From the NCBI GenBank assembly GCA_020891255.1, contig BQFW01000002.1, forward strand, positions 1,240,001-1,304,000: 64,000 nucleotides of DNA. The letters run 5' to 3'. The notes under the pieces were generated by a model. The model was not told the DNA's origin, made no database searches, and saw only the letters and a program-made list of their open reading frames with translations. The position numbers and the translations under genes were made by a program. Every line of letters starts with the position of its first letter. Position 1 is the first letter of the stretch. This document shows positions 6,953-64,000 of the stretch, one piece after another. The DNA comes from Entomortierella parvispora E1425 (lineage: Eukaryota; Fungi; Mortierellomycota).

Positions 6953-7856
6953 CTTTCTTTTTGCCTCTTTTCTCCAGGCCAGTATCTCCAAGACGACATT
7001 GCATGGAAGAGAAGGGACTTGACAACTCTTGCAGTTCTCTTTTTTTGAGTCTGTCGACATGACAGCACTCTATCTATACATTTTTTCCAGATTAGGAACA
7101 AAGTGAGAATATTGGTCCAACAAGACCATGTTGAAGGTCTAAAGTGAATATGACAACTACAGTACAGAGTGTTCAACCACAAGATGTGCTGACGCGAGTT
7201 GATTTCCACCCCAACAACCCCTCCTCGGAGCGAAATGATCCTCTTCTTGTGACACTAAGCACGTTATTCGCGTCGTCAGAATGGTCACTGGCTAATTGGG
7301 AAAAGATCATCTCGCCCCAGCAATTGTTTGCGCTAGAGAAGGAAAAAACCCCCAAGCAGACGCCCTGCGACCATGCTCCCTTTCCCCACGGGCAACATTC
7401 CTGACGGACAGAGCGGGATACACAGCAGACAAGCAGACAGACAAGGGTTCCTTCACGTGGAGAGCCGTGGCGGGATGAGGGGAACAAAGCGTAAAAGAGC
7501 AAACTCTGTTCGCGGGGATCTTTTTTTTTTTTGTTTGTTTGCTGTGATGTAGATATCTCACCTTTACTTCATTGTTCATTGTTCATACCCTCTCCTGTTC
7601 CTTGCTCCTTCTTTTCTCTTCCTCCCTTTCTCTCCCTAGTATCCAACACACTGACGCCCTCATCACTTCCTCCACTCACTCCTCATTCTCTCTACTCATT
7701 CACATCATCTCTTTTTCTTTGCATCCTTCCAGTTGTCGTTGCTCCAACAAACAAAACGCCGGATTTGTTTCACCACACAGACACGTCGTTCGTTGCACCC
7801 TGCCCCTCTTCTCCTGATCCCTAGATCGACTTCCGACCTACTTCTTTCCTCTCGGG

Positions 7857-10195
7857 ATGATTTTCGATCATGTCCTCACGAGAGGCGCTGCACGTTCTCT
7901 AGGCGTGCTCGCTATCGCCGTCCCCGTGGTGGCGACTTTTTTCTTCGTCTACCTGCTCGCGTACCGGGAGACACCTCTGGATACCCTCGTAAACAACTTC
8001 CCACTCTTTCTTCAACTTCTTCAGTCAAATATCTCGATACCCACTTCTGCAGCCTTCTCAATACCCACAGCAACGACCACAAAACTCCTCGATGTTGCAC
8101 CACACAACATCATGGCAGCATCTCCACTACCAGCACAGTCTCTCCTAAACACGTACAATGATGAGCACAATCTGCATGAATCTGACATCAGCAACTTCAC
8201 TCTACCTCCACTGGTCAATGGCCTGCTTAAAGTCGCAATGTTCTTGGAGAGGCGCGGTTATGGTGTCACGGCGACCCAGATTCCAGGATATTCGTCCCTG
8301 GTGGTTTTATTCCAGTCCCTTGAGCGGACCCTTCTGGGTCCAATATTCTATCTCCTGGCCACTCGCCAGACCTTGAGTTGGATCGTGTCCGCGATCCATC
8401 TATGGATGGCCTCTGAACTCGTCTTTTACGTCTATTTTTGGAGGCGTCTTGCTCATCTTCAGCACGTTGGTGGTATGATGCAGGGCCCTAAGTCCTCCAA
8501 GGACCGTAAAGAGCTTTTCCAGCGGTGTATGGAGACAGTATCGCCGGGGGAGGGCGCCAGAAAGTGGGTGGAAACCTGGTTCGACACTGGCAGGACAGCA
8601 GAGCCGGCCAAATTTGACCAAGTCGGACGATCGAATATGATGCACTGGTAGGTTGTTTGTTGCGCATTCCAATGATGATGGATTACCAAGCGCAGATCTT
8701 CGGCAGTTCTTCGGTTAGACCATTCTCCCTCTCTTCTTCCTTCATGTTTCCTTCATGTTTACTTGAACTACATCATTCATGGGGCTGAAGAATTGTTCCT
8801 TTGCTCCCCCCCTCTTTTTTTAACATCCGAAGCTGGGAACCTGGGAACTGTCCGTCAAGAAGGAGGGCTCTCCGTTATCCAGGATGGCGGCGGTCCTTCC
8901 CTTTTTTTCTGGGGACGTCTATTTACCGTCGTATGATTGCCCTATAATATAGGCTGGCATGGTCTTTCTGGGCGGCTTCAGTCGACGAAATCTTTGAATC
9001 GCCATCCGGGATGATGGAGCTCAATGCGATGGTCGACACGATTGAACGTACAAAAGACATCCGGTTTGCAAAGGGATTCAACCCAGAGATTGAGTGTATC
9101 CGCCTTTCCCAGGACCCTGTCATTGCCTCGTATCGTCCGCTCATTCACTACGGCGTAGGTGGACTCCCTCTGCTATGCTATGACGTTATGACGTATTGTT
9201 GATTCTAATCTCGCTTCGCCCATTTTTTTTTCTCCGGCTTCCGGCCACAGTTAATCTGGTGCGTCAACGTTATTGCCGGTGTTGTCTTCCGGCTTGTCGG
9301 CTTTGTTCGGCACGAGAGCAAAGCCACGCGTTCGTCAGACATGCTTTACGCAAGCAGCTCCAGCGCCTTTGACCCGCGCACGGACCTGGCTTATTGGCAT
9401 CGGTCGCCCGTCGATCCTGAAAATAAGGTCCCTCTAGTGTTTATCCATGGCATTGGTATCGGCCTGGCACAGTATTTTCATTGGGTCTTGGCCCTGACGA
9501 CCATATCCCGACCGATCATCCTGATCGAGGTGTCCTATGCCTCCAGCAACTTTTTTCTGCGCGAGAGCATGACTCCAGACGAGATGTACTGTGCAGTGGA
9601 GAGAATTCTGAAGGAACAAGAGTACGCGAAGGCGACATTCATGGGTCATTCCCTCGGAACTATCGTGTGTGCTGCAATCTGTCGCGCTAGTCCCGCCTCT
9701 TCGCCTATATCCATCATATCGGGCCTAATCCTGGCAGACCCTATTTGTTTTTTCACCCTTCATTCTATTGCCCGCAATTTCGCCTACAGGACCCCATCCA
9801 CGGCTAGCGAGTTGATTATGGGCCACTTTGCGGCGCGTGAGATTGGAACATCCTGGTACATCATGCGTCGTTTCTGTTGGCATCAATGCGTCATGTTCCC
9901 TGTCGCCTGGAAACATCGAGATGAATCCGTGTCCAAGTCCTTTAATGTTTCCAGTGATACCTTTTCCTCCATTCGGGGACGATTGTCTCCCGTGCTGCCA
10001 AAACAGACGAGGGTGTTCTTGTCCGAGAAGGATAATCTGTTGGACATGGGCCTGGTTGCCGAGTACCTTCGCGATCAAGTCGGGCTAAAGGAGGAAAAGG
10101 AAGAGCTGGTGGTCATGAAGGGCATGGAGCACGCCCAATTCCTGTTGCATCCGAGCTGGTTTTTGAAAATGCTGAAAGCAGCCCTGGAGTGCTGA
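7857..10195 (+). CDS. Membrane-anchored alpha/beta-hydrolase fold protein (putative lipase/esterase)
   Basis: Exons 7857-8647, 8953-9154 and 9251-10195 are in frame. N-terminal TM helices, oxyanion region VFIHGIGIG, nucleophile motif GHSLG, and candidate Asp (SEKD) and His (MEHAQF). Confidence 0.85.
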
Positions 10196-10668
10196 CGAAA
10201 GAAAGAGTGCTGACGAAAGAAAGAAAAAAAAAAGTCTCCTTCATACCATGTCGTCATTGTAGGTAGAAATAGTCTGGACCTATCATGTATTAGACCCTGT
10301 AAAGTACCCTCAATTCACTAACATCTTTTGCCGACCCTCTTATCAAATGTTCAGTTGCATGAATGAGAGACGTTCTTGGGCCGCCTTGACCCACTTTTCC
10401 TTCTTCCCCCCTCTCTCCATTTCGCACATGTCTGTGCGACAATGCAAAAAGAGAAAAAAAGAAAAAGAAAAAAGCCCCCAAGTGAACATGAGAAGCGACT
10501 AAAACAATGAGAACGTGGACGTGTTCTACCCGAAAGAGGTGAATATTTTTATTCCGCTGGATAATTCGCGATTGCGCTATTCTTCCTTTTCGCGTGAGAA
10601 AAAGTAGTAACAGAGGAGAGAGATAGAGTGAGAAGGGAGAGAGAAAGAGGACAGATTGCTCCCTCTTT

Positions 10669-11147
10669 CTAGTTGGCGTATTGCTCGTCGTAGAGCTTCT
10701 CGGCCTCCTTCTTGGCCTGGTGCTTGGCCTTCTCACGGTCGAGGAAATCCAAACCCTTGGTCTCGAAGAGCTTGTCGGCCTCGGCACCAGCCAAACCGGC
10801 CAAGAGCTCCTTGGTCAAGGTGTGCTTTTTTTCGTGGGAAATAAGACCAGATAAAGCAGAAGGAAAGAAAATGAGTCAATTGAACACGCACCTTCAAGAT
10901 AAGAATAAAGAGTGATGCCTTCCTTCCATTTTCTTCAAAGAGCAAGAGGAACAAGAACACAGGGGAAAGGAGGGCTATTCTCTAGAAGGAAATAAAACAG
11001 TCTTACCTTGCCACCGGGATGAGACGCCTCATAGGCCTTGGCAGCCTGGAAAGCGGCAGCGCCTGCAATCAATTCGTGAGACCAGTGGGACTCGTGCTTG
11101 GCGTTATCGCCATAGACTTGTTCATGAGCGTCGCCGAAACCGAACAT
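10669..11147 (-). CDS. CipC-like (DUF3759) small stress/antibiotic-response protein, copy 1 (98 aa)
   Basis: Exons 11147-11007 and 10824-10669: MFGFGDAHEQVYG...HELIAGAAAFQAAKAYE...KELLAGLAGAEADKLFETKGLDFLDREKAKHQAK. This matches the CipC family pattern. Confidence 0.88.
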
Positions 11148-11827
11148 TGTTTTTGGATTGGTATTGGGTGTGGAAAAGAGGTGGGAAGGAGATTTTGTTG
11201 AGAGAACTGAAAAGAAAGAAAGAAGAGAAAGGTGAACAATGGCCGAATCTATTTGAACGGCCCAAAAAAAAAAGGCCCAATTCACCCCTCTCTGAAAACC
11301 TGTTGGACCAGGTACCCTGGAGGATATCAATCATCAACTCGATGGGCGATATCGCCATCGCCTCTGCGATGAGCAAACAGCAAAGTCAAGAGACGAGACG
11401 CGTCCTTGCTTTTCTCATCGGCTCGCGATTCCTGCCTGAGCACACAGACCACAAAAATGAGACACAGAGAGAGACGAGAGAGTTTTTTGTGACGCAAAGG
11501 AGGAGTAAAGCACCATTACCTAGTCTCATGGTTTGCTTTCTATCGCGTGTGAATTTGCGCTTCGACCGACGATGGGCGCCCGCTATGGCCCTTCCCTCTC
11601 TTTTTTGCTTGTTCAGATGGTATTGACTGTATTTTTATTTTTCGCTGTCAAGACCACAATCGCTCGAGCGATTAGGACTCAGAATTTTTTTTGGTTATAT
11701 ACAAGTCCAAGGGACAACATCGCTCCTGAAGAGAGAATGTTGAGTCCTTTAGACGGCTTTTGTTTTGGTCTTGACGAGTAAATATGGATATACACGAGAC
11801 TGGCACGACATAAAAAGTTTCCACTCT

Positions 11828-12252
11828 TTAGTTGGCGTATTGCTCGTCATAGAGTCTCTCAGCCTCCTTCTTGGCCTGGTGCTTGGCCTTCTCACGGTCG
11901 AGGAAATCCAAACCCTTGGTCTCGAAGAGCTTGTCAGCCTCGGCACCGGCCATACCAGCGAGGATCTCCTTGGACAAAGAGTGCTACATGCAGGACAATG
12001 GCAAGTGAGGACGGTTAGCTTGTTGACGACATTTATGGAGGGAGGAATGGATGGAGGAAGAGGAGGCAAGGAATCCATTGATTGGAGGGAGACAGGGAAG
12101 GAGTTGCTTACCTTGTCACCGGGGTGCTGCTGCTCGTACAACTTGGCAGCCTGGAAAGCGGCAGCGCCGGCAATCAATTCGTGGGTCCAGTGGGACTCGT
12201 GCTTGGCATCCTGGCCATAGACATCGTTGTGAGCATCGCCGAAACCGAACAT
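11828..12252 (-). CDS. CipC-like (DUF3759) protein, copy 2 (98 aa)
   Basis: Exons 12252-12112 and 11983-11828, with the same exon lengths and intron position as copy 1. Confidence 0.88.
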
Positions 12253-13543
12253 GTTGATAAGTTTTGAAGTGGGTGTGGAGGTTGGGGAAAGGGAAAGGGA
12301 AAGTGGAAAGGATGAGAGAAGAAAGGGAAAAAGAGAAAACCATCGAGGTGCTGTCTCCCTTTTATACCTTGTTCGAATCGATCTTGAGAAAGACAACGAG
12401 CCAAGTCGCGCGAGCGTGGGCAATTGGGCGGGAAGCAAGCCTGAGGGCATGCCGAGGCAATGCGACACGTACAGCAAACGTCAATGCCAACCTAACAGCT
12501 GACATGTACAAAGAGTTCAAGGGGTGCATGAGGGATGCCTCGACAGACTTTTGTCTTCTTTGGCCTGGGGCTCTGGTCTAGTTCACGTACACGAGCGTTA
12601 CCCTTTCTTTTTTGGATGTTTGGCCTGTTTGCTTACGCTTCAAGATGACCACCACAGGAACAACCACCGATAGCCTGTTCTCAAACCTGATTGGGTGTAA
12701 GCGACGTTGCGGCAATATGTTTATTGGAGTCCAAGCCAAAAAAAAAAAAGAAATGCCCCAAAAGAGCAGAAAATCACTTTTGTCTTTGGGTCTATTCTAT
12801 TTCCGCTCATCCACAGTGCCATAGCGGTTCTGTGGATGGACACAAAGGGGCCGCATTTGTCCTAGTCTCTGCATGAATTTTCCTTTCGTTTCCATTTGCT
12901 TTGTTTGCAAGGGTTGAACCTTACTTCTGCGCGCGCAATTAGTATGCTTCAGGACCCGCGATGTCATATCTTTTTCTTTTTTGGAGGATCATGTCATTAT
13001 TGAAAGTGCTCACATGGTAGAAAAACGTAGAAACCTGCTTTTCAAAACTGATGATGACCATGCCCCCTCCTTCCTTCTTTTGCTATGGGTATATCTTCTT
13101 CCATGACATACATGCCTGTTTCCTCGCAGAGCTCTCCCTTCTTCCCCTACAGCCTTCGTCGGGAGCTCCTCTCCCGTGCCGTGAATTTTTTTTTTGTTGG
13201 CCAGTTGACCAGCAACCAGAACCGAACTTTGCAATCAACCAGGAAACACAATGCTCTCCACCATTATACATGACATGAGGTTTCTGGTGGATAAATGATT
13301 GTGATCAGGGTGTCCAGCCAAGGTTTGATATTTTCTTCGCTCCTCTGCTTATCACACCTTCGTAGCCGCTGTAGCCACGATTGTTCGAGTTGTCCCGAAG
13401 AGAAGTTGGACAGCGTTATAGCGTTATACCCTCAACCCAGCGCGCCATACCACAGCCACGAATCAAGGCAATGTCCACATAGAAGACCACCTAGAAAGGA
13501 AAGAAAGGGGGGGGGGGGGGGAAGGTGATCGGTCGACGTGTTC

Positions 13544-13595
13544 CGTATAGAGTCTCTTGACCAGAGCGTTTCGTATAGAGTCTCTTGAACAGAGC
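13544..13595. repeat. Tandem direct repeat, 2 x 24 bp (period 28), just after a G15 run
   Basis: cgtatagagtctcttga(c/a)cagagc at 13544-13567 and 13572-13595; poly-G at 13507-13521. Confidence 0.85.
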
Positions 13596-14332
13596 CTGTT
13601 ACTTTTCCGTGAGATAGGTGGAAGCTCCGGGTCTTGGGCCTAGATGGTCCTGTGGGTCCCGGCGCACAAGTATGGGTTTAGGAAAGTGCCATTGGTCAAG
13701 CTGTGCTTGGCAATAAAGGTAGACAGGAACCACATATTAAACTTAATAGAAGAGGATGGACCAATTGACGCGTATTCTACGCGTTACGATACCTTTATCG
13801 GCCATAGAGTAGAAGGGGCGGGGAGGCTGTAGAAGGGTATGGGGTTAATCTTGATGAAGATAATGAGGTCCATGCAGTCAGGAAGCAACTTTCTGGGGGA
13901 CCTTTGTGGCCTTGGATATATCAGTGGTGTTGTCAAAGCTCAATAAGAAAAAAAAAGAATGAATCTAATCTAACTGATGATGTTCACTGCTTTTCCATCG
14001 AAAGTAGAAGGATAAAATGAACAACACACGATTGGGGCAAGTACGAAGTATATAAAAGTGAAATAGACGTTCATTGTCCGTTGTTCGTAGGCGATGAGCG
14101 TTGCCGGTGTTCCATTGATGGCAAAGTCCTATCGTTGTCCGCTGGAACCAGTCTACTCAACAACGAGCGGCGTGTGACAATCGACGGGCGTGATGAAAGG
14201 AAGGCCAGTGAAAGAAGCAGTGCTGTGGCATGCAAAAAGAGACGAGTGTATCAAACGAAAAAGTCGGCGGAAAGACGACATGGTTGTTGGCCAGATTCCC
14301 AAAAAATTGCGGACCACCAAAACAAAAGAAAG

Positions 14333-14405
14333 CGCCCAATGTGGGGGTCGAACCCACAACCTTCAGATTAAGAGTCTGACGCTCTACCGATTGAGCTAAC
14401 CGGGC
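14333..14405 (-). tRNA. tRNA-Lys (CTT), identical to the copy at 6880-6952
   Basis: The reverse complement matches 6880-6952 base for base, with a T-rich terminator. Confidence 0.98.
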
Positions 14406-14566
14406 TAGCTGTTATCCTTTTGATATCTACCAGAATTTTCAGACATCTATATTTAGATAATCCAAGACGAATTCACGTGACAACTGAGGCTTGGACGTTG
14501 AATCACGTGATCTCCGTTGAAGGCATTTCGATCCAACAATTTCTTGAAAACAACAAGAAACAGCTC

Positions 14567-14639
14567 GCTCGTTTAGCTTAGTCGGTAGAGCGTCGTGCTA
14601 ATAACGCGAAGGCCGCAGGTTCGATCCCTGCAATGAGCA
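14567..14639 (+). tRNA. tRNA-Ile (AAT)
   Basis: Acceptor stem GCTCGTT/AATGAGC, anticodon arm TCGTG-CTAATAA-CGCGA, T-loop GGTTCGAT, and a T-run downstream. Confidence 0.97.
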
Positions 14640-14854
14640 TTTCCTTTTGCTTTTGGCATCTGTTCCTTTTCTGCTAGCGAACAGTGGTCGCCTATTCGTT
14701 TTCGACCATGAGACCTCATCGCATCTCTGTGGAAGCTTTGAGTGACGACTTAGTGATGAGGGTTTATTGTGTAGGTCCATGGCGCAAGAAGGTATTGAGA
14801 AATATTGAAAAAGGGGTACAGTAATAGGTATGGTTGGGAGACCAAATTTGGCAT

Positions 14855-16378
14855 CTAAAAGCCAGTAAGAGCATCGCGGAAGTGGTATTCCTTTCGCTCA
14901 GGCTCAGAGGATACAAGAAGGATTCTCTTGAACTCAGTCATGAACCGCTGGGCGCTCTCCTTAGACTTGAACGTGGCCCTCTGCCAGGTACTGGTCACCG
15001 TCAAGATACCATTTGCAGTCGCCGCATTTAAGGTAAACGGAGAACTGATAGTACTCGCGTCTTGAGAAAAGACAGAGTGCAAGACCTTGAACGCGATGGG
15101 GGTTGCTTCGGTCGCAGTTTGATCCCAGGCTTTGCCAATGTTGGAGAGCTTGAGAGTCGTTTGGCGTCCATGCTGCTCTTTCTTGATGTGTCCCTTCATA
15201 AAGTCATCCCAGGAATCCTTGGGAATGAACTCCAACAAACCGGTGTATTCGAGAAGATGGCGAACTCCTTTGCGAGTTGTGGTCCCTTTGACAATTTCCT
15301 TGCGGTACTTTTGAGCCAAGACCCAAAACTCAGTGTCCAGCCGCACGCGAATATTCTTGGTCGTAATCTCGGACGTGTAGCTGCCTTGGTCATTGCGTGC
15401 AATTGGAGGTTGGACCAAAGAGCGCAATGACACGGGGGTTCCAAAAGTGAGGATGTCTTTCGTGGTCGTGACAATGTTCTTTTCCTTGTCCACCTTGGAC
15501 AGGTAAACCGCCTTGGTGGCGAAGACCGAAGCAGCAAAGAGAATAGCCTGGACAGTGGTATTTCGAGCCTTTGCTGCTTTTGCCATAAGCGAGGTCTCCT
15601 CTTGAGTGAGGAACCAAATGTCCACTTCGGTTTCGTGCGGAGCCTCTAAAGTCGCGTCGATTTCTCCGGCCCAGTATTTCTGCTCGATCGCTTTTTTCAA
15701 AAAGCCAGGCAAGAGTAGGCCCGTGGTTGCCTCCTTGATTAACAAGGTGTAGCTCGGTTGGCAATTCACGCGCGCCTCCATGTTTAGCGGCAGCTCGTGC
15801 GTCGGCGAGGTCACAACGGTTGAAGAAAGGGGTCTGTCCGTTCCATGCAGGGCGGCGTCTAGGTTGATCTGCTCCACCAACTGCTCCGTCAGAGCCATTG
15901 CGGACCGACCATCACCGATAGCGTGTTGAAAGTTGTAGAGGATGTAAAATGTGTCGTCTTCTTGGACTTGAACCACTATGATGCGCCAGAGAGGCACCTC
16001 AACATCCAAGTAGTCGAACATGACTCGATGCTCTTCCGCTAGGACCTCTGAAACATCTGCAGGGCAGCGCACCGTTGCCACTCGGATGACTTTGTTCAAA
16101 TCAACCGAGGGCATTCGCAGAAATTTCGGATGAGGCGAAAGATGATCACCCACAACAACAGAAAGGACAGAGTGTTGCTGAATGAGGTTGGTGAGAGGTC
16201 TGGCTAGAAATTGGAGCCACCCGCTATGGTCTTGAGGCAGAGGTGGCGCAGCCTTGCCCTCGAGGGGCTGAATCTGCAACCGTGTGCCGACAATGACATT
16301 GCTATAGACGCCAGCATTAGCACGGGCAAGACTGTATCGCTCAAGGTTCGCAACGTCGCGAACAAATGGTAGTGACAT
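14855..16378 (-). CDS. Alcohol acetyltransferase / condensation-like acyltransferase (HxxxD), intronless
   Basis: A single open frame from the probable start MSLPFVRDVANLERY at 16378, with motif FQHAIGDGRS and C-terminal TTLKLSNIG, typical of the ATF1-like AATase family. Confidence 0.82.
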   Translation of the reverse strand: MSLPFVRDVANLERYSLARANAGVYSNVIVGTRLQIQPLEGKAAPPLPQDHSGWLQFLARPLTNLIQQHSVLSVVVGDHLSPHPKFLRMPSVDLNKVIRVATVRCPADVSEVLAEEHRVMFDYLDVEVPLWRIIVVQVQEDDTFYILYNFQHAIGDGRSAMALTEQLVEQINLDAALHGTDRPLSSTVVTSPTHELPLNMEARVNCQPSYTLLIKEATTGLLLPGFLKKAIEQKYWAGEIDATLEAPHETEVDIWFLTQEETSLMAKAAKARNTTVQAILFAASVFATKAVYLSKVDKEKNIVTTTKDILTFGTPVSLRSLVQPPIARNDQGSYTSEITTKNIRVRLDTEFWVLAQKYRKEIVKGTTTRKGVRHLLEYTGLLEFIPKDSWDDFMKGHIKKEQHGRQTTLKLSNIGKAWDQTATEATPIAFKVLHSVFSQDASTISSPFTLNAATANGILTVTSTWQRATFKSKESAQRFMTEFKRILLVSSEPERKEYHFRDALTGF

Positions 16379-16803
16379 GAAAGGAGAAAGGGGGGATGGG
16401 GTGAATGAAGGAAAGAGGGATGGGGTGAATGAAGGAAAGAGAGATGGTGATGGGCTGATCCTGTTGGTTGAAGCTTTATTCGCCAAGGGTGAGGTTTGGG
16501 GGATTCCCGGGCTTTTCTGGGCTTGCGGGCTGGAGCCGCTCCGCAGCTTTGGTTAAAAATACGTAGTTATTTAACAGGTTTCGTTATTTTTTATGAATGG
16601 CTTTCAGTGGTGTGATATGGGTTCGTCTCCTCTTCCCGCCGTCCATGTACCGGTCTGCAAAGGGCGCTAAGCTGTGGTAGGCACCCTACATACAAACGCA
16701 GGAAGGAAGACACCAAGGTGGACGAAACTGAAAAAAAGAAAAAAAAAAACTACAAATTGAAAACGTGGGATTGGGATGTGCGGGTGCAGATGAACGGACA
16801 GTC

Positions 16804-57315: not shown

Positions 57316-59452
57316 GATGGATTTTCAAGGTGTATCAAGCAGCCAGTGAGGTCAAAAAAAACAAACGAGGTCTTTTGATCGTGCAGTGGTTTAAAAACGA
57401 GTAGTAAAAAAGGATTGGGAAAAAGGAGACCAAGAATTTTGCTTTGGAGATGGATATTCGAACAAGGAAGCAAGAACAAGGGACGTGGATGTAGATCGGC
57501 GATTGGATCAAAAGACGCAAGGGGGGAGCTGGGCGAAGACAAAGGTCAGGGTCGTGCTTGCGGTGGAATGTCAACGAGGGTGCTGGTCAGGAATGGGCTG
57601 AATGAGCCAAGTTGGGCAAAGCAAATGTAGTTTGGAAAAAAGCAGACGAAGAAAAGAAGGGCAAGTCAGAGAAAAAAATTGGGCATAGATTGTACAGTTG
57701 ATGGCAGGGTGGATAGAAGAAGAAGAAGAAGAAAAGGTCGCCGGAGAAGTGGGAGGATCGAATAGAAAAAACAAGGGAAAAAAGGTCAAGACGAAGTGGT
57801 GACGGCAAGGGTGGTACAAGTGAGATACAAGCAAGCGAGTGAAAGGGCTGGTTCCCAAGGGTAGGTGTGGTGGGTGTTGTTTGTTGTTTTTAGCTGGGAG
57901 GATAGGATTTTGGGTCCAAGGGTAAGTCAAGGGAGGAATCAAGGCAGGAGGAGGCGGAAGAGCAGGAGGGAGATAGATGAACGAGGAGGAGTGAGGAAAG
58001 AACAATGGACAAAAGGGAGAAAGACAAGAAGAAGCACACCACCGCCCGCTGGCAGTCAGCCCAACCAACCAAGGCGAATCCAAACCCAGACCACGAGTGT
58101 GTGAACATGGCGACTTCTCCCCCCCAAGTCCGAGCATGGACAGCCAGCTGAGGCCGACACTAGAAGGCATGCGACAGGGGCCACGGCAGAAACCCGTTTT
58201 GAAATTGGGATGAATCACCTAACGAAAATCCAATCAATCAATCGCCCCGCTTTCTTGCTCTGGCACCTTTATTCACTTCCGAGCGGTTCAATTGAATGCT
58301 AAAGTGGGCAACCACTCAGCAGAGCGTGTGTGAGTGGGCGATCGCCCGTTGCAAAATCGCTCCGATCTGGATTCCTGACTGAATTTCCTTTCAGGGGCCA
58401 ACGTAAGTCACACTCCACAGGCGAGACACCTCACGAGGTTCCGCTCGTCCCCCATGTTGGATCCATACTGAGGCAGCCCTTGACCGAACACGACCCTGGG
58501 CATGGTCCCCATAGAGCAGAGCACTCGTGAGTGGGCTAGGGGAGGAAGAGGAAGAGAAGGAAGGTTTGGTATGGTGGCAGAGGGGACATGCCCCAGAGTG
58601 GCGGGACCAGATCTTCAGGAAGGAAAAAGAATAATTTTTTTTGAGGGACATTCGGTCGGACTGAGTTTCGGCACTTCCTCTTTCGTCCAACAATTCTGGT
58701 TTGTTGGTCCGTTCCAGGGCGTGCGCTCGCCGAGTGCGCAATTTTTGTGCATCTTTTGTATTGAGCGCAGGTGTCTAGTCGCCCTGTGCATGCTGCGAGT
58801 CTACGCCCACAACGGTCCGATGGAGGTGGGGAAGCGGCATTCCGGGCCCTCTGGGCGAAACACTGCAGATCTTGTGTTTTCTTCGGCCTCCGGAGGAGAA
58901 GAGCCACAACACTGATTCAGTGCAACGTGGTTGTTCAATATGGTTTCTACGCCCGTAAAGTGTTGGTCATGCCATGTTTCTGGTCTCTCAGAAAAGAAGG
59001 GCAAGAACATAAAGTCGTCCCGGAGTCACTTTGGAGTCGTGGCGCTCGTCATCTTCAACCGTGGCAAAAAGCTGCGGCCGCAATTTTGTGACGCTGAATA
59101 CAAGTTGGGCCAAAACGCCCTTTTTTTTTTTTTTTTGCAGAAAGCAAAGGACAGCAGAATGGACCAGGTCGAGATCTCAAAAAGTCCTGCTGGCCTCTGA
59201 CCAAGGAGGAGAGGGCAGTCAACTGTGCTTGAACCTTGTTCCTGGAAAATGACTCCTTCTCTCTTCCAACGTTGCTCTCGCGTGGGTCGAGCCCAACGGT
59301 TCTCGTAATATTATCCGCTCGCTGGAAGATTGGTAGTTCCTTAGACCCCGCCCTTTTTTACTTTATGGTTTTCTTTCTTCCCCAGAGTCTGATGAATGGG
59401 TGCTGAAGCCGCACCCCTTTTTTCTTGCTATTGCTAAGGAAGGAAACCTTTG

Positions 59453-59723
59453 ACCTGACGACAACCGAGGATTGACTTCCCTTTGGGGGTCGCTCATGCA
59501 GCTGCACAACTTTGTGCCCTTGTTTATCGGTGGGTCCTATTTTCAGTTTGGTGATAGCCCTCACTCGGCGAAAGTTGCTTGGCCCACGGAGACAACCCAA
59601 CCTACGACATTCTCAAACCTTGACATCAAAATAGGAGCAGCCCGAAGTTCGGCGTGTTGCGTGAAAGGCTCTCTTGCATTTCTGTATCTGCAAATGCAAT
59701 CTTCAATAAATGTCGTCAGGTTG
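59453..59723. repeat. Cluster of inverted repeats just downstream of the Fanzor stop
   Basis: acctgacgaca (59453-59463) / tgtcgtcaggt (59711-59721) is a perfect 11-bp pair; caacct-acgacatt (59598-59611) pairs 14/15 with 59709-59723; tcctatttt (59535-59543) / aaaatagga (59628-59636); and an 8-bp ttgcattt/aaatgcaa hairpin near 59675-59700. Confidence 0.75.
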
Positions 59724-59792
59724 CTTTTTCTCGTGTTTGCTTGGACTGTCACCTGCTGGCTTTGTGGGCCACATTAGAGAATACCAAGAATA

Positions 59793-62700
59793 TCAGATGT
59801 CGCTCGCAGCAGAGTTCACAACCTTGTCAAATACGAGCTTGGACTTCAGAAATACAGCGTCTGACTGTAGCCTCGTTCGAGGAGCAGCACTTGATCCGCC
59901 TCGGATTGTGCTACGTGTTTGGTGGGGTCCAGAAGCTGGCTGGTGTTGATCGAATTTTTTTTCTGGTACAAGATATGGGCGGAATGGCGCCAAGGGGATC
60001 CTGTCGTCATCCTTGATCGCAGAATATCCTGATATTCCTATGCATACACAGGCTTGTGTGTCTCGCGGCCGAGTCGTGTAGCCGTTCTTGTAGGCAGGAC
60101 ATGCCGTGTTGAAACAGACTTTGGATCCATTCACTGTTACTGTGTTGATGGTCCTGCCCTTTTCTGACCCCACAATTCGCCTTGAACGCGCCGAGTGGGT
60201 TTTCTCCAAGCAGAAGCAGCACCGCTGCGTTGACATGTACTCATCCGTGACTACAACAGTCCCGACCTGACGATGTTGCTTCCTGATGTTCTTACCACCT
60301 AGGCGATAATGGCCACCAATCCTGGATCCAACACCAGTGCCAGCTGCACCCATAAATATCACATGGCGGACGACTGGGGTTGTCTTGACACAATGCGTAG
60401 GATGCTTATATGGAGCCGCGATGCTGGACTTGGATATCTCGATGCAACAACAATTGGAGCAATAACCAGAAGCTGTGTCCACGCTTGGTTCACCACGTTT
60501 GTCTTCGGCCAATTTGTTGATGGTGTACTCCGCAGATTTTGCTCGCAAATTGCTTGCGACTTTGGCCCAGGCCCGTTTGGTCCGATGCCTACAGGTACGA
60601 CGGAGTTTCACAAGATCACGATCCCTGTTCAGCTCTCGTAGGCTGTTGTTTTCAGCAACCGAGTCGCGGATCTTGATGGCAATCTGGACGGATTCGATGG
60701 TTGAGGCCGTAGCAAGAGATGCATCTGGATCCAAAAGTTTCTCCAGATCCGCCTTGGCTTGTTTGTACTTGTCGGTCTCGAGCAAGCGCTCCCGTTTCCG
60801 ACGAAGTTTGCGGCCAAAAGAAATGTCCTCTACTTGACGTGCTGTTATTCGATGAGCCTTCGGGAGTTTCATCTCTTGTGTGGCTTTTTTTGCTTGAATG
60901 CGCCTCTCCTTCGTCCAAGGTTCAGTAGTAATGTCAACCAGTTCCTCCTCTTGCTTAGAATAGTGCTCCTCCGGCGCAGCATGTTCAGTAGGCAAAAAAA
61001 GCTCCTCCGTTGTATCAAGATCTACATGCAGGACATGAAAGATAGTTATTAGCATCAGGATTAACAATGTGTCAAAAACATTTGGACTACGGCTAATAAT
61101 TTTGTAGAACTTACCTGCAAGAACTTGGAAACGGTTCATTGACTTTTCAATTCCCTCAACTGTCAAAAAGACGTTCTCCGACATCACTCGTACGCCAGGG
61201 TCCTCGCTACATATCGCCACAACCTGGATCCGTTTGGACCCTGGTAATGGTTTGAGATGTTGGTCAAATATTGGCTTGAGGTCCAATCGTTGCGGGATGT
61301 CCTCTGCTTGCGGCCATTCCCAAGAAGGAGAGGTATGGGAGGGGTCCGTTTTTCTTGCCTTCAATTTCTTCTTCGGGTTATCCTTTGGCGCCTTTCGCTT
61401 TGCTATGGCCAGCAGTCGGTTCCAATAGTAGAGATCTTTTTTGGCACGATCCCAGGCCATATCCAGCTGACTAAACCTCCTTTCCTTGATCCTAAGTATT
61501 GCCTGTTGTGCCTTGAGTTCAGACATTTGTTGTTTTTTCAAGGTGATGTTGCTCTCATTGTTGCTGATGGTCCAAGGGATTGCCCTGATGCCACTATTCA
61601 ACGCGTTGCATTCTTTCCGAAGAGCAGCAAGCTCCTTGCGAGGGCCTTCCCGTTCCTTTGCCGTAAGCTCAACTTGTTTCGTGGCCAGTTCAACCTGATG
61701 CTCGACATCGTCCTTGGACATGCCTCTGCTTTCGAATTCCTTCCGCCAATGTGCATTTCTTCCGTTTTTTAAGCCTGAGCCCGCCTTCTTGCTTTCTTCG
61801 AACGCGCTATGGACAGGATGACGGGTATCGGACTTGGTCGTCTGCGGTCCCGATAAGTTGAGAGTATACTGGTCCACAAAGGTCATCCTACACAGTTTTT
61901 CAGATACGGACATCAGCTTTTTTTCCTCGTCTAAACTCAATTGTTGCTCATAACAGTGCATGAGGTGTGTACATACCGCATGCCAAACGTAAACCCATGT
62001 CTCTTGCATATGCCTTCAATTTTCTCGATGTCGAAAATGTTTGCAAACACTACCCGCTTTGCATTGAATGACGCAGTGCAGTCAGCAACGTTGGTCATGA
62101 TGCCGGTTGCACCATGTAGGTCATATCGGCCGGCGCTCTCTCCACTTAGCACTTGGTAGAGATGACCAGCGCCCAGCTGTAAACCGTGGATCTTTCCCGA
62201 GGAGATAGAGGGAGAGAGTCGTCTGGTGAACTCCGTTTGGCCCAACAACCGCAGCACCGCGTTGGAGATGAGTACAATTGGAGCGCGCAGGACAATGTGT
62301 GGGGTATGATGACGATAATCCTCATCTTCAGCATCCCTCCAGCGGCGAGGAACATAGGGTCGCAGAAAATTAATGATCTTCTGTGCGACAAGGAGTTGCC
62401 GTTCAGTAAAGGAGGTTCCTTTGTATAACGAGTCCTTGATGTGATCCATGCTGAACGTTGGGGTCGGTAACGGGGACTCGAGCAACGTCCTGACGACGGT
62501 CTGCAGACGCCGAAGGGTCTTTCGACTCGGTTCCTTCTCCTTAAGGTCAGAGTTGAGAGTAATCGGACTACTTTGACTTGCATCATCTACATCCATGACC
62601 CACTCCGTATCGAGTTCGTCCGCGAAGGCTTGACTCTCAAGGAGGCACATATCGAGATCATCGTCTGAAGAATCCTCCTCCGAGAACACGTCTTCCATAC

Positions 62701-64000
62701 TCTCATCATAGGCCAGGTCAATATCCGACGCTGAAAGTCCAGCCTCAGAGATCCTCTGAAATGACTTTTTGGATTCTTTGTCAGCTTCTGGCGGCTTTGT
62801 ATCGTAGAGGGCCTGGAGCGGAGCAACAAAGTGATGAAGCTGATCGGTGCGACCACTCGAGTAATATTTCGCAACTTTGTTCAGAAGCTTGCTCATGGAG
62901 TGACGCCAGTGCGATCGACTTGGTTTGTCCGAGCTGGAGTCTTTGGTGGCTTTTTGCTCGTTCTTTTTCTTGACTGCACTTGACTTCCGCTCCTTATGTG
63001 CCGCCATTCGATCCGGGGCCAACCAAGCCGATAAAAGATAGCGCAGGAGATAATCAAGAGCTTTTTCATAAATCTTCCCTTCCCACAAGTTACTGATGGC
63101 GGTTGCGCATTGACGAGTATGAGCCTCGACAACTTTGGAGTACCTGTCTTTGTGGGGGGCGATCAGACCCGGGACCTTACTGTCGATGGTCTTTGCCAAC
63201 TCTAGCCATTTCGTATGATTGCCAGACTCCTTCTCTAGCCAAGTTTTTCTGCGAGCTATTGGATCCTTTTTGAACTGTGTGTAGAGTTGGCTCAGGTGGT
63301 TTTGTGATAGAACGTTGCGGATGTCGCTATGGAGACTAGAGTTCTTGTTTTCGATGTCACTCTGCAGTGCGACTATTGGTGCCACGTTAAGTATCCTTTG
63401 TTCAGGCGGGATGATGCATTCTGATGGTAAAATATCGCCCAGGCATAGGGTACCCTGTTGCCCTGAGAAGACACCGCCTGCTATCTGCAATTCAATAACA
63501 GATGAAGAGTATCAGCATCAACTTCGATATATGTAGTACAGTGCTACAACGTCAGACTCTGACATCCAGATTCAACTCACCAGGATCGTTCCAACTTGTG
63601 CCAGGAGGTAAAGCGACTGTTCAACGTCCGTTAAGTGATCCTGTGCTTCTTGAAGAAGACTAATAATTCTGCTAAAGTCTTCGTGGTTCGAAAGACCGGG
63701 ATGAAGGGCTTGCTTCATTGTGACCGTACATGTTCGCCATTCCTCAGTGTTCTCGTCATCGTCCGCAGTGTTGGGCTCAGGTTCCCTTCCTTCATCTGGA
63801 CCACATTCCTTTCTCTTCTTTCCTTTTTCAGCCTGAAGTTGGTTGTCTGCCAGACTCTGCTCGGAATTTGTCCAGATTTCGTCAAACTGTCTTTGAACAA
63901 CCTCGCACCAAACACGAAGATTGTTGTTGCTGGTAGCTGCAGTGATGTCGCTGACGACCTGCATACGCGTCAAAGACTGGTTCCTTTGTTCGATGTATAA
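59793..64000 (-). CDS. Fanzor1-like (eukaryotic TnpB family) RuvC nuclease, at least 1309 aa, 5'-truncated by the window
   Basis: Exons 64000-63581, 63484-61977, 61887-61115 and 61021-59793 total 3930 nt with no internal stop. RuvC-I ICSEDPG (D at 61200-61202), the motif VIFMGAAGTGVGSRIGGH, RuvC-II VVTDEYMSTQRCCFC (E at 60240-60242), Zn finger partner CFNTAC, and RuvC-III RPRDTQACVCI (D at 60060-60062). Confidence 0.88.
59853..59935 (-). ncRNA. Candidate Fanzor omegaRNA scaffold overlapping the 3' end of the ORF
   Basis: Consecutive stem-loops downstream of RuvC-III: GTAGCAC-a-ATCCG-agg-CGGAT-caa-GTGCTGC, CCTC-GAAC-GAGG and TACAG-7nt-CTGTA. The location matches where TnpB/Fanzor omegaRNAs usually lie. 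Boundaries are unproven. Confidence 0.45.

Follow-up and report, generated by a model that had tools for sequence, protein, structure and literature searches.

The right end of the window, by which we mean the whole 64,000-nt stretch of DNA that was analysed, raises the question of what is encoded by the long spliced frame on the minus strand between positions 64,000 and 59,793. The first-pass annotation had proposed a giant, intron-containing and apparently intact Fanzor1-like nuclease with greatly expanded REC/WED regions, and had considered domestication as one origin. The reading that we favour, and that is probably correct, is that 4.1 kb from the 3' part of a mobile element are seen here; the element has at least 5.5 kb, exists in about 4-5 near-identical copies in a soil fungus of the Mortierellaceae, and encodes a spliced Fanzor1-type protein of about 1560-1600 aa that would be RNA-guided.

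All three introns first proposed for the locus follow the GT-AG rule on the minus strand, and their removal joins four exons into 3930 nt. The resulting frame has 1309 codons and meets no stop before the TGA at its end (59793-59795), against 39 and 65 stops in the two alternative frames. The first exon in view (63581-64000; visible codons 1-140) is still open where the window ends. It is followed by intron 1 (63485-63580, 96 nt), across whose junction two annotated homologues, P0003 and P0002, run gap-free; at this position, E. parvispora has an intron that contains a stop. Exon 2 (61977-63484, codons 141-643) holds an N-terminal region without domain assignment, an acidic stretch (62651-62680), and, from about 62440, the beginning of the Fanzor-like core. 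Intron 2 (61888-61976, 89 nt) matches the position of an 85-nt gap in E. parvispora. Exon 3 (61115-61887) carries a coiled-coil insertion, the basic motif PKKKLKARK, and the RuvC-I strand, and exon 4 (59793-61021) encodes RuvC-II/III and the zinc ribbon, its last 20 codons and TGA (59793-59855) being flanking DNA that is read through.

Intron 3 (61022-61114, 93 nt) is in frame and stop-free, so its sequence by itself is no proof of an intron, and the support is comparative. Its 31 residues are missing from homologues, and annotated homologues cross all three exon junctions without gaps. A copy that is about 10% diverged, from another strain (X4), has a 1-nt deletion at 61074 within intron 3 and a 3-nt indel in intron 2, and its exon indels (3, 3, 3, and 9 nt) are all multiples of three, a pattern that refers to the listed indels only, as 25 more exist. 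Spliced residues 27-1237 are collinear with residues 279-1468 of the 1587-residue Mortierella alpina protein KAF9576093 (P0003; E = 7e-276), a match well beyond chance. Contigs from four sequencing runs that were compared with the window showed no splice joints. Splicing of the four exons as modelled is thus supported by comparison, and the first-pass model of a single stop-free frame of at least 1309 codons, open at base 64000, is borne out.

The alignment to P0003 places the N-terminus outside the window, about 270 residues past base 64000, and the source-strain contig extends 1388 nt beyond the window edge at unchanged depth. Full-length relatives measure 1445-1823 aa. Counting the part past the window, the full protein would be about 1560-1600 aa, over double the ordinary Fanzor1 length and larger still than first estimated. 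Fanzor1 proteins usually have 600-700 aa and reach about 800 aa (PMC11423790, PMC10711439), and the visible part alone, at least 1309 aa, falls outside the usual range.

The catalytic residues were found in the places where they had been noted at first reading. The RuvC-I aspartate D872 (61200-61202, minus strand, as are all protein features given here) lies in EDPG and is an aspartate in 51 of 52 family sequences. The glutamate E1161 (60240-60242), in DEYMST, is conserved in 33 of 35, and the RuvC-III aspartate D1221 (60060-60062), in RPRD, in 30 of 32. A CCCC zinc ribbon (TNB/NUC; 60099-60221) is formed by C1168, C1171, C1203, and C1208; E1161 and the first two cysteines all fall within DEYMSTQRCCFC, and the last two within CFNTAC. 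The three acids and four cysteines are near-invariant across the family. In Fanzor proteins, the glutamate is missing from the canonical RuvC-II position of TnpB and has been relocated to the loop that connects the final RuvC strand to the TNB domain (PMC11423790, PMC10530073). E1161 occupies this Fanzor1-type site directly before the zinc ribbon, and the preceding strand, VIFMGAAGTGVGSR, has no glutamate. HMM alignment places the family DEY glutamate on E541 of SpuFz1, and D1221 aligns with D606 of the same protein, whose catalytic residues have been described (PMC10432273, PMC11423790). The elements of the Fanzor motif of Bao & Jurka, D-X(125,275)-[TS][TS]-X-X-C4 zinc finger-X(5,50)-RD (PMC3627910), occur in order (D872; S1164-T1165; C1168, C1171, C1203, C1208; an 11-residue spacer; R1220-D1221), but the distance from D872 to [TS][TS], 291 residues, slightly exceeds the published 125-275.

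A C-terminal family profile searched against 177,635 PDB sequences matched only SpuFz1 (8gkh, E = 1.1e-3) and PpFz1 (9cf0, E = 0.018), across the DEYxTSxxCxxC ... C.N..C ... RD block, and matched no TnpB or Cas12 sequence. The Pfam family PF07282 (OrfB_Zn_ribbon / Cas12f1-like TNB) was matched by 14 of the 32 family members (best E = 9.8e-7). Exon 4 of the window did not match PF07282 even at E <= 1, the window's exons alone matched nothing in Pfam, NCBIfam, or the PDB (phmmer), and a three-sequence profile had no match in the PDB; it is the profiles, together with the modelled structure of an orthologue with 70% identity, that place the window protein in the family. Protein-language-model features in the Atlas linked the family to PF07282-bearing clusters from Mucoromycota with a score of 0.96. 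A profile search of a 5.8-billion-protein set returned members of the giant Fanzor family only and no canonical Fanzor1.

Structure prediction agrees with the profiles. An initial AlphaFold model from a three-sequence alignment reached a pLDDT of 45 and was set aside. The AF2 model of the orthologue P0001, which is 70.6% identical to the window protein, had a pLDDT of 83.7 and a pTM of 0.81, and the strands and helices of its split, RNase H-like RuvC fold follow the expected order. In a Foldseek search of the PDB, the top seven matches were all Fanzor1 (SpuFz, PpFz, and GtFz; E = 1.8e-4 to 1.4e-2; probability 0.87-1.00, at least 0.99 for six of the seven), and Cas12 proteins came next; AlphaFold DB matches included proteins named Cas12f1-like TNB. 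VIA-align superposition on Fanzor1 structures gave Z = 10.3-10.9 over 375-405 residues, covering SpuFz1 159-633, and TM scores were low (0.2-0.3) because of insertions. Mapped from the P0001 model, the equivalent Fanzor1-like core comprises spliced residues 489-1250 of the window protein (59973-62440), with part of REC, WED, RuvC, and TNB. The conclusion that the C-terminal approximately 800 residues are those of a TnpB-superfamily protein of Fanzor1 type, with its catalytic triad intact, holds on these profiles and the predicted structure, and the proposed RuvC and zinc-ribbon homology stands with it.

Where the additional length lies bears on a further claim. The region that matches SpuFz1 159-633 takes up about 760 aa here, in part because about 105 aa (spliced residues 701-806; 61398-61715), inserted upstream of RuvC-I, form an antiparallel coiled-coil hairpin, which is modelled in P0001 as helices 214-257 and 268-320 with pLDDT above 90. 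N-terminal to the core are about 760 residues versus about 158 in SpuFz1, or roughly 600 extra. The proposed expansion of REC/WED thus applies to the enlarged core, and the roughly 600 extra residues upstream match nothing. No recognisable domain was found in the latter against Pfam and the PDB. Specifically, XPG_N/XPG_I or OTU domains were absent at Pfam E <= 0.1 from 16 family N-terminal regions, XPG or OTU Pfam families were absent at E <= 0.01 from six full-length members, and an N-terminal profile retrieved no FEN1, XPG, or OTU structure from the PDB at E <= 10. A DDE_3 match in one family member scored 16.9 bits versus a cut-off of 28.6 bits and was taken to be noise or a gene-model artefact. 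An Atlas match of the N-terminal region to DUF8286 clusters, with a top score of 0.82, was too weak for use. In exon 3, PKKKLKARK (61350-61376) is a candidate nuclear localisation signal. Possible roles of the coiled coil and the N-terminal residues are oligomerisation, partner binding, or nuclear/chromatin targeting.

Such an addition could also mean that an active RuvC domain has been repurposed, with protein-protein or protein-DNA targeting, or another mobility mechanism, in place of a programmable guide RNA. We consider this improbable. The extra N-terminal residues and the coiled coil are conserved across Mortierellaceae, as repurposing would lead one to expect, and a 7.3-kb element of Mortierella sp. 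GBAus27b, in which neither a transposase ORF nor terminal inverted repeats were seen, fits it as well. Against this, no column of the N-terminal alignment is invariant for an acidic residue, His, Cys, Ser, or Tyr, as would be expected of a second active site, and neither Pfam nor the PDB offers a match, whereas the model contains each of the regions with which SpuFz1 contacts its guide RNA (WED, RuvC, and TNB). Moreover, the triad is intact here, and all characterised superfamily members that have kept it are RNA-guided (PMC10432273, PMC10530073). By analogy with these members, the protein encoded by the element would be guided by RNA.

The gene is carried by a mobile element, and its family has moved recently in at least two Mortierellaceae genomes. 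In the source strain (X1), the assembler unitig depth is 342 for the element and 74 for its flank, a ratio of about 4.6, and the copies are over 99.6% identical; the copy number of about 4-5 is derived from assembler word depth. In strain X6, which goes under the same species name, the element is missing from the site, and the contig matches 58001-59848 and then diverges. Zero of the element's sampled sequence words were present in five runs with this species label. The DNA at 58001-59855 is single-copy flank by its depth in X1 and its presence in the element-free X6, and breakpoints between repeat and flank place the 3' boundary of the element at about 59856-59871. A downstream block (59453-59723) was considered as part of the element and rejected, as it is single-copy flank that is present in X6. 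In Mortierella sp. GBAus27b, at least eight near-identical paralogues lie on separate contigs, in the 7.3-kb element, whose ends are sharp; target-site duplications there are inconsistent, with 6 bp, 3-4 bp, and none in one copy each. Within the window, searches found neither a second copy nor repeats, inverted or direct, around the element boundary; nor were a transposase, terminal inverted repeats, or a target-site duplication found for the element, whose 5' end is beyond the window. The lack of a visible transposase in the elements examined raises the question of how such elements move.

These data bear directly on the suggestion that a Fanzor has been domesticated here as a host gene in single copy. 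Such an origin would suit the introns, the conservation of the catalytic residues, and the length of the intact frame, and E. parvispora apparently has one copy that is packed tightly between host genes. However, the depth of about 4.6 times that of the flank, the near-identity of the copies, and the missing element at the X6 site and in the five runs speak against it, as do the dispersed GBAus27b paralogues and a neighbourhood that differs in every species examined, with no synteny to the loci of either E. parvispora or M. alpina. Domestication is therefore very unlikely, and this part of the first-pass annotation falls away.

The 3' end of the element requires a separate assessment. In the window copy, the ancestral stop codon at the element end has been lost and 20 codons of flank are read, so the description of the gene as apparently intact stands for the 1309-codon frame and the catalytic residues and fails for the native stop; the N-terminus is out of the window. 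The window copy could accordingly be a defective offshoot of a family that is otherwise active, in which case, with its stop gone and some 3' sequence of the sister copies maybe missing, the correct guide RNA or protein is perhaps not made. We give this a modest chance. The sister copies in X1 and the copy in X4 share AATAGTTTTATYCTAA... past 59864-59871, which the window lacks, and they stop after 2-6 further codons versus 25 in the window copy; another copy ends abruptly at 60055. This shared downstream sequence may, however, simply be DNA that flanks an orthologous insertion of greater age, and the X4 copy is homologous to the window until about 59855, where the X6 flank starts, which fits a complete 3' end. 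In addition, the window copy differs from the majority copy at 13 positions (7 synonymous and 6 nonsynonymous), while its long frame and all catalytic residues are kept.

The terminal 80 nt of the element (59856-59935, minus strand) contain two hairpins and are a candidate for the end of a guide-RNA scaffold. Hairpin 1 has a nested stem, GUAGCAC/GUGCUGC around AUCCG-AGG-CGGAU, and hairpin 2 is CCUCG-AA-CGAGG (59871-59882). RNA folding at the 3' end of the window copy gives weak z-scores (-1.3 and, for the terminal 80 nt, -1.9), and the 165-nt 3' tail of a relative is strongly structured (z = -3.0). The terminal stems are kept in E. parvispora with three two-sided changes, in a comparison of two sequences only that 73 of 500 shuffles also reach and that is not significant. 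A wider covariation test failed because the C-terminal tail aligns with E. parvispora only; in relatives at 50-58% protein identity, similarity ends after the RuvC-III helix. Rfam contained no match for a cognate omegaRNA.

Under the favoured reading of a mobile element with a giant Fanzor1-type protein, the sole visible gene of the element, with at least four exons, would produce a protein that binds RNA transcribed from the 3' end of the element, as SpuFz1 does. Here, the end of the reading frame is also the 3' end of the element, as in bacterial TnpB. Guide nucleotides derived from the flank would direct cutting of matching double-stranded DNA beside a short adjacent motif, and such cleavage may aid the persistence or spread of the element.

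At 50% identity, the public sequences of the giant Fanzor family fall into 833 clusters, and all family records checked are annotated as "hypothetical protein". Six family accessions that were checked are absent from the supplementary catalogues of two major Fanzor surveys, and the literature searched included no paper that links Fanzor to Mortierellaceae or describes the giant family. An intact Fanzor1 catalytic core is kept inside proteins of 1450-1820 aa, versus a published ceiling near 800 aa. If these proteins are RNA-guided, eukaryotic descendants of TnpB have been enlarged much like the prokaryotic Cas12 proteins, and the family would represent a new clade of programmable nucleases with new accessory modules. 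As a long shot, giant Fanzors might even be a distinct class of self-sufficient eukaryotic elements, in which the N-terminal module and coiled coil supply mobility, integration, or chromatin targeting and the approximately 1600-aa protein makes up, together with an RNA from the 3' end of its gene, an RNA-guided element that is autonomous and has no separate transposase.

Among known systems, SpuFz1 of Spizellomyces punctatus (PDB 8GKH, 9CEU-9CEZ) is the best profile match and one of the best structural matches. Both proteins share the order of part of REC, WED, RuvC-I, a helical RuvC insert, RuvC-II, the CCCC zinc ribbon, and RuvC-III, the glutamate directly before the ribbon (E541 = E1161), and the aspartate of RD (D606 = D1221), and both come from multi-copy elements in fungal hosts. 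In contrast, SpuFz1 is a protein of 637 aa from a single-exon gene and has 30-nt terminal inverted repeats, whereas the protein described here has about 1560-1600 aa and at least three introns, no such repeats were found, and identity in the aligned core is 12-14%. RuvC-I reads D-P-G here, and in SpuFz1, N385, two residues past D383, also coordinates metal.

PpFz1 from Parasitella parasitica (PDB 9CF0-9CF3), a zygomycete-grade fungus of the Mucorales, is the second PDB profile match, through the DE[FY]RTSxxCxxC ... hG..C.N..C block, and aligns structurally with the P0001 model over 375-381 residues. It has been enlarged by a lineage-specific FRI domain of about 100 aa (PMC11423790). This extra domain lies within RuvC and binds cyclophilin, whereas in the giant protein the coiled coil precedes RuvC-I and the N-terminus is greatly extended; at 722-726 residues, the modelled PpFz1 chain is also much the shorter. 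Bacterial and archaeal TnpB (e.g. ISDra2) and the compact Cas12 proteins (Cas12f, Cas12j/CasPhi) have the RuvC and zinc-ribbon core in common with the giant protein, and the structural matches include Cas12j and Cas12f (Z of at most 11.1 over about 250 residues). Unlike the giant protein, TnpB has about 400 aa, a canonical RuvC-II glutamate, no introns, and an associated TnpA; as in IS200/IS605 TnpB, the frame described here reaches essentially to the 3' terminus of its element.

The gene under study lies on the minus strand at 59793-64000, and its model is based on comparative evidence. Removal of three introns that begin with GT and end with AG (intron 1, 63485-63580; intron 2, 61888-61976; intron 3, 61022-61114; all on the minus strand) joins four exons into one 1309-codon frame, which is still open at base 64000 and free of stops up to its closing TGA (59793-59795). 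Residues 27-1237 of the spliced protein are collinear with residues 279-1468 of a 1587-aa Mortierella alpina protein (E = 7e-276), and three annotated homologues cross all three exon junctions without a gap. The sequence and these homologues confirm the first-pass annotation, which had joined separate ORFs into a stop-free frame of at least 1309 aa. At the position of intron 1, Entomortierella parvispora carries an intron that includes a stop, and at that of intron 2 it shows an 85-nt gap. Intron 3, being in frame and stop-free, could in principle be coding; the 31 residues it would encode are missing from the homologues. In the approximately 10% diverged copy of another strain (X4), the indels listed comprise one of 1 nt in intron 3, one of 3 nt in intron 2 and four of 3, 3, 3 and 9 nt in exons, with 25 further indels outside this listing. 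The spliced model was accepted as the predicted gene structure. The window edge cuts off approximately 270 N-terminal residues, and the source-strain contig extends 1388 nt beyond base 64000.

At an E. parvispora locus (L006, from BQFW01000010.1; 7450-12522 of that locus), adjacent annotated genes of 595 aa (7552-9525) and 785 aa (EMPS_07264, 10001-12522) are together collinear with one giant-Fanzor homologue, and probably represent a single gene split by annotation. Elsewhere in the window, a 543-aa minus-strand ORF (14855-16486) matches alcohol acetyltransferase or wax-ester synthase-type acyltransferase domains (PF07247, E = 1.6e-20), and seven other long ORFs tested there had no Pfam match at E <= 1e-5.

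Searched by themselves, the exons in the window had no match in Pfam, NCBIfam or the PDB. An exhaustive HMMER search gathered a family with 833 representatives at E <= 1e-3, of which 125 also reached E <= 1e-30. Every record checked was annotated as a hypothetical protein and came from Mortierellaceae (Mortierella, Actinomortierella, Linnemannia, Gryganskiella, and Entomortierella), apart from one Umbelopsis fragment. Searched against 177,635 PDB sequences, a C-terminal profile of 32 family sequences gave exactly two matches, SpuFz1 (E = 1.1e-3) and Parasitella Fanzor1 (E = 0.018), in an alignment spanning DEYxTSxxCxxC ... hG..C.N..C ... RD. PF07282 was matched by 14 of the 32 members, and protein-language-model features also indicated this family. 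An AlphaFold2 model of the 70.6%-identical E. parvispora orthologue, built from a 72-sequence alignment over the part equivalent to window residues 486-1284, reached a pLDDT of 83.7 and a pTM of 0.81. The best seven Foldseek matches of this model in the PDB were all Fanzor1 structures (SpuFz, PpFz, and GtFz; Foldseek probability 0.87-1.00), followed by Cas12 proteins. VIA-align placed model residues 4-751 onto SpuFz1 159-633 with Z = 10.3-10.9 and 375-405 residues aligned. Profile, Pfam, language model and predicted orthologue structure are independent tests that tie the C-terminal region to Fanzor1, in support of the Fanzor1-like RuvC/zinc-finger assignment made initially from the window.

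The motifs previously read from the sequence (EDPG, DEYxSTQxCxxC, CxNxxC, and RD) were all found in the correct order, as EDPG (D872), DEYMSTQRCCFC (E1161, C1168, and C1171), CFNTAC (C1203 and C1208) and RPRD (D1221), complete with the D, E, D acids. In the HMM alignment, E1161 and D1221 fall on SpuFz1 E541 and D606, two of its metal-coordinating residues (PMC10432273). As in the Fanzor-type layout, E1161 sits shortly ahead of the zinc ribbon (PMC11423790, PMC10530073). Among family members, the catalytic D, E and D are retained in 51/52, 33/35 and 30/32 sequences, respectively, and the four zinc-ribbon cysteines are nearly invariant.

The protein was initially described as roughly double-sized through expanded REC/WED regions. 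Its giant size holds, as full-length family members measure 1445-1823 aa, but the extra length is partly a coiled-coil hairpin together with N-terminal sequence. The window segment equivalent to SpuFz1 159-633 comprises approximately 760 aa, in part because of an antiparallel coiled-coil hairpin of about 105 aa just upstream of RuvC-I (residues 701-806; 61398-61715, minus strand). N-terminal to the modelled part are 488 visible residues and the approximately 270 beyond the window; SpuFz1 has only about 158 residues in this position, so roughly 600 are extra. This region contains an acidic stretch and conserved helices in the family and has no Pfam or PDB match; in its alignment, no column is invariant for an acidic residue, His, Cys, Ser or Tyr. 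XPG/FEN1 and OTU domains gave no signal in the family. One M. alpina member (KAF9947605) has a sub-threshold match to DDE_3, a Tc1/mariner-type transposase domain, at residues 180-224, scoring 16.9 bits where the cut-off is 28.6. The match may come from part of a nested element, from an artefact of the gene model or from chance.

The window gene is a mobile-element gene. Source-strain contig depth is 74 in the flank (58038-59915) versus 342 across the gene (60099 to beyond 64000), and therefore indicates about 4.6 copies, collapsed into a single 5.3-kb unitig with 13 differences from the window, 7 of them synonymous. A contig from X6, another strain under the same species label but without the element here, follows the flank as far as about 59848-59855 before diverging; five runs carrying this label contain none of the sequence words sampled from the gene. 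The genomic surroundings of the homologues in E. parvispora and M. alpina bear no relation to the window. Mortierella sp. GBAus27b carries at least eight paralogues, over 90% identical, on different contigs. The alternative of a domesticated gene, entertained in the first-pass annotation, is contradicted by the elevated depth, the X6 site, the unrelated neighbourhoods and these paralogues.

The GBAus27b paralogues lie inside a repeat unit of 7344 bp (8002-15345 of locus L002, with matching units in L003-L005), which is about 98% identical between copies and encodes a 1582-aa family member. Its ends are sharp, reading TAATAAGGAGCAAGTAGG at the 5' end and ...CCCGTGAGCAATCACGGGCTTTCAGCTAGTT at the 3' end. 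Some 2 kb at the 5' side appears to be non-coding, the 165-nt 3' tail is strongly structured (z = -3.0), and a subterminal hairpin lies 13 nt short of the 3' end. The unit has neither terminal inverted repeats nor a second long ORF.

At the window locus, the 3' breakpoints lie at 59871 for sister copies, at 59864 for the X4 copy (residual homology to 59855) and at about 59855 for the X6 flank, which places the element end at about 59856-59871. An inverted-repeat block at 59453-59723 was rejected as part of the element, as it is single-copy flank also present in X6. Homology to E. parvispora DNA stops at 59866, four bases ahead of the stop codon of that sequence, and the X4 copy has a TAA within its last ten bases; the ancestral frame thus reached the element's terminus. 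In the window copy this stop is gone, and the frame runs 20 codons into the flank. Downstream sequence common to the sister copies and X4 is missing from the window: either it flanks an older orthologous insertion, or the window copy is truncated at its 3' end. The last 80 nt of the element are predicted to fold into two hairpins (z = -1.9). Both persist in E. parvispora, where three changes are two-sided, a comparison of only two sequences that is not significant; more distant relatives do not align here.

These data show the homology, the fold, the intact catalytic residues and the mobility. In the best reading, the window protein would be a Fanzor1-type, omegaRNA-guided, RuvC-dependent DNA endonuclease on a recently active element, its RNA guidance and DNA cleavage being inferred. 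Six family accessions were absent from the supplementary catalogues searched for two Fanzor surveys, and no paper linking Fanzor to Mortierellaceae was found in the literature searched. Lengths published for Fanzor1 mostly fall at 600-700 aa (PMC11423790) and extend to about 800 aa (PMC10711439). The searched catalogues do include a canonical 677-aa Fanzor of Mortierella sp. AD094 (KAF9348689.1), in supplementary file 3 of Saito et al. 2023, and ordinary and giant forms therefore both occur in Mortierellaceae. In extending to the end of its element, the ancestral reading frame resembles that of bacterial TnpB.
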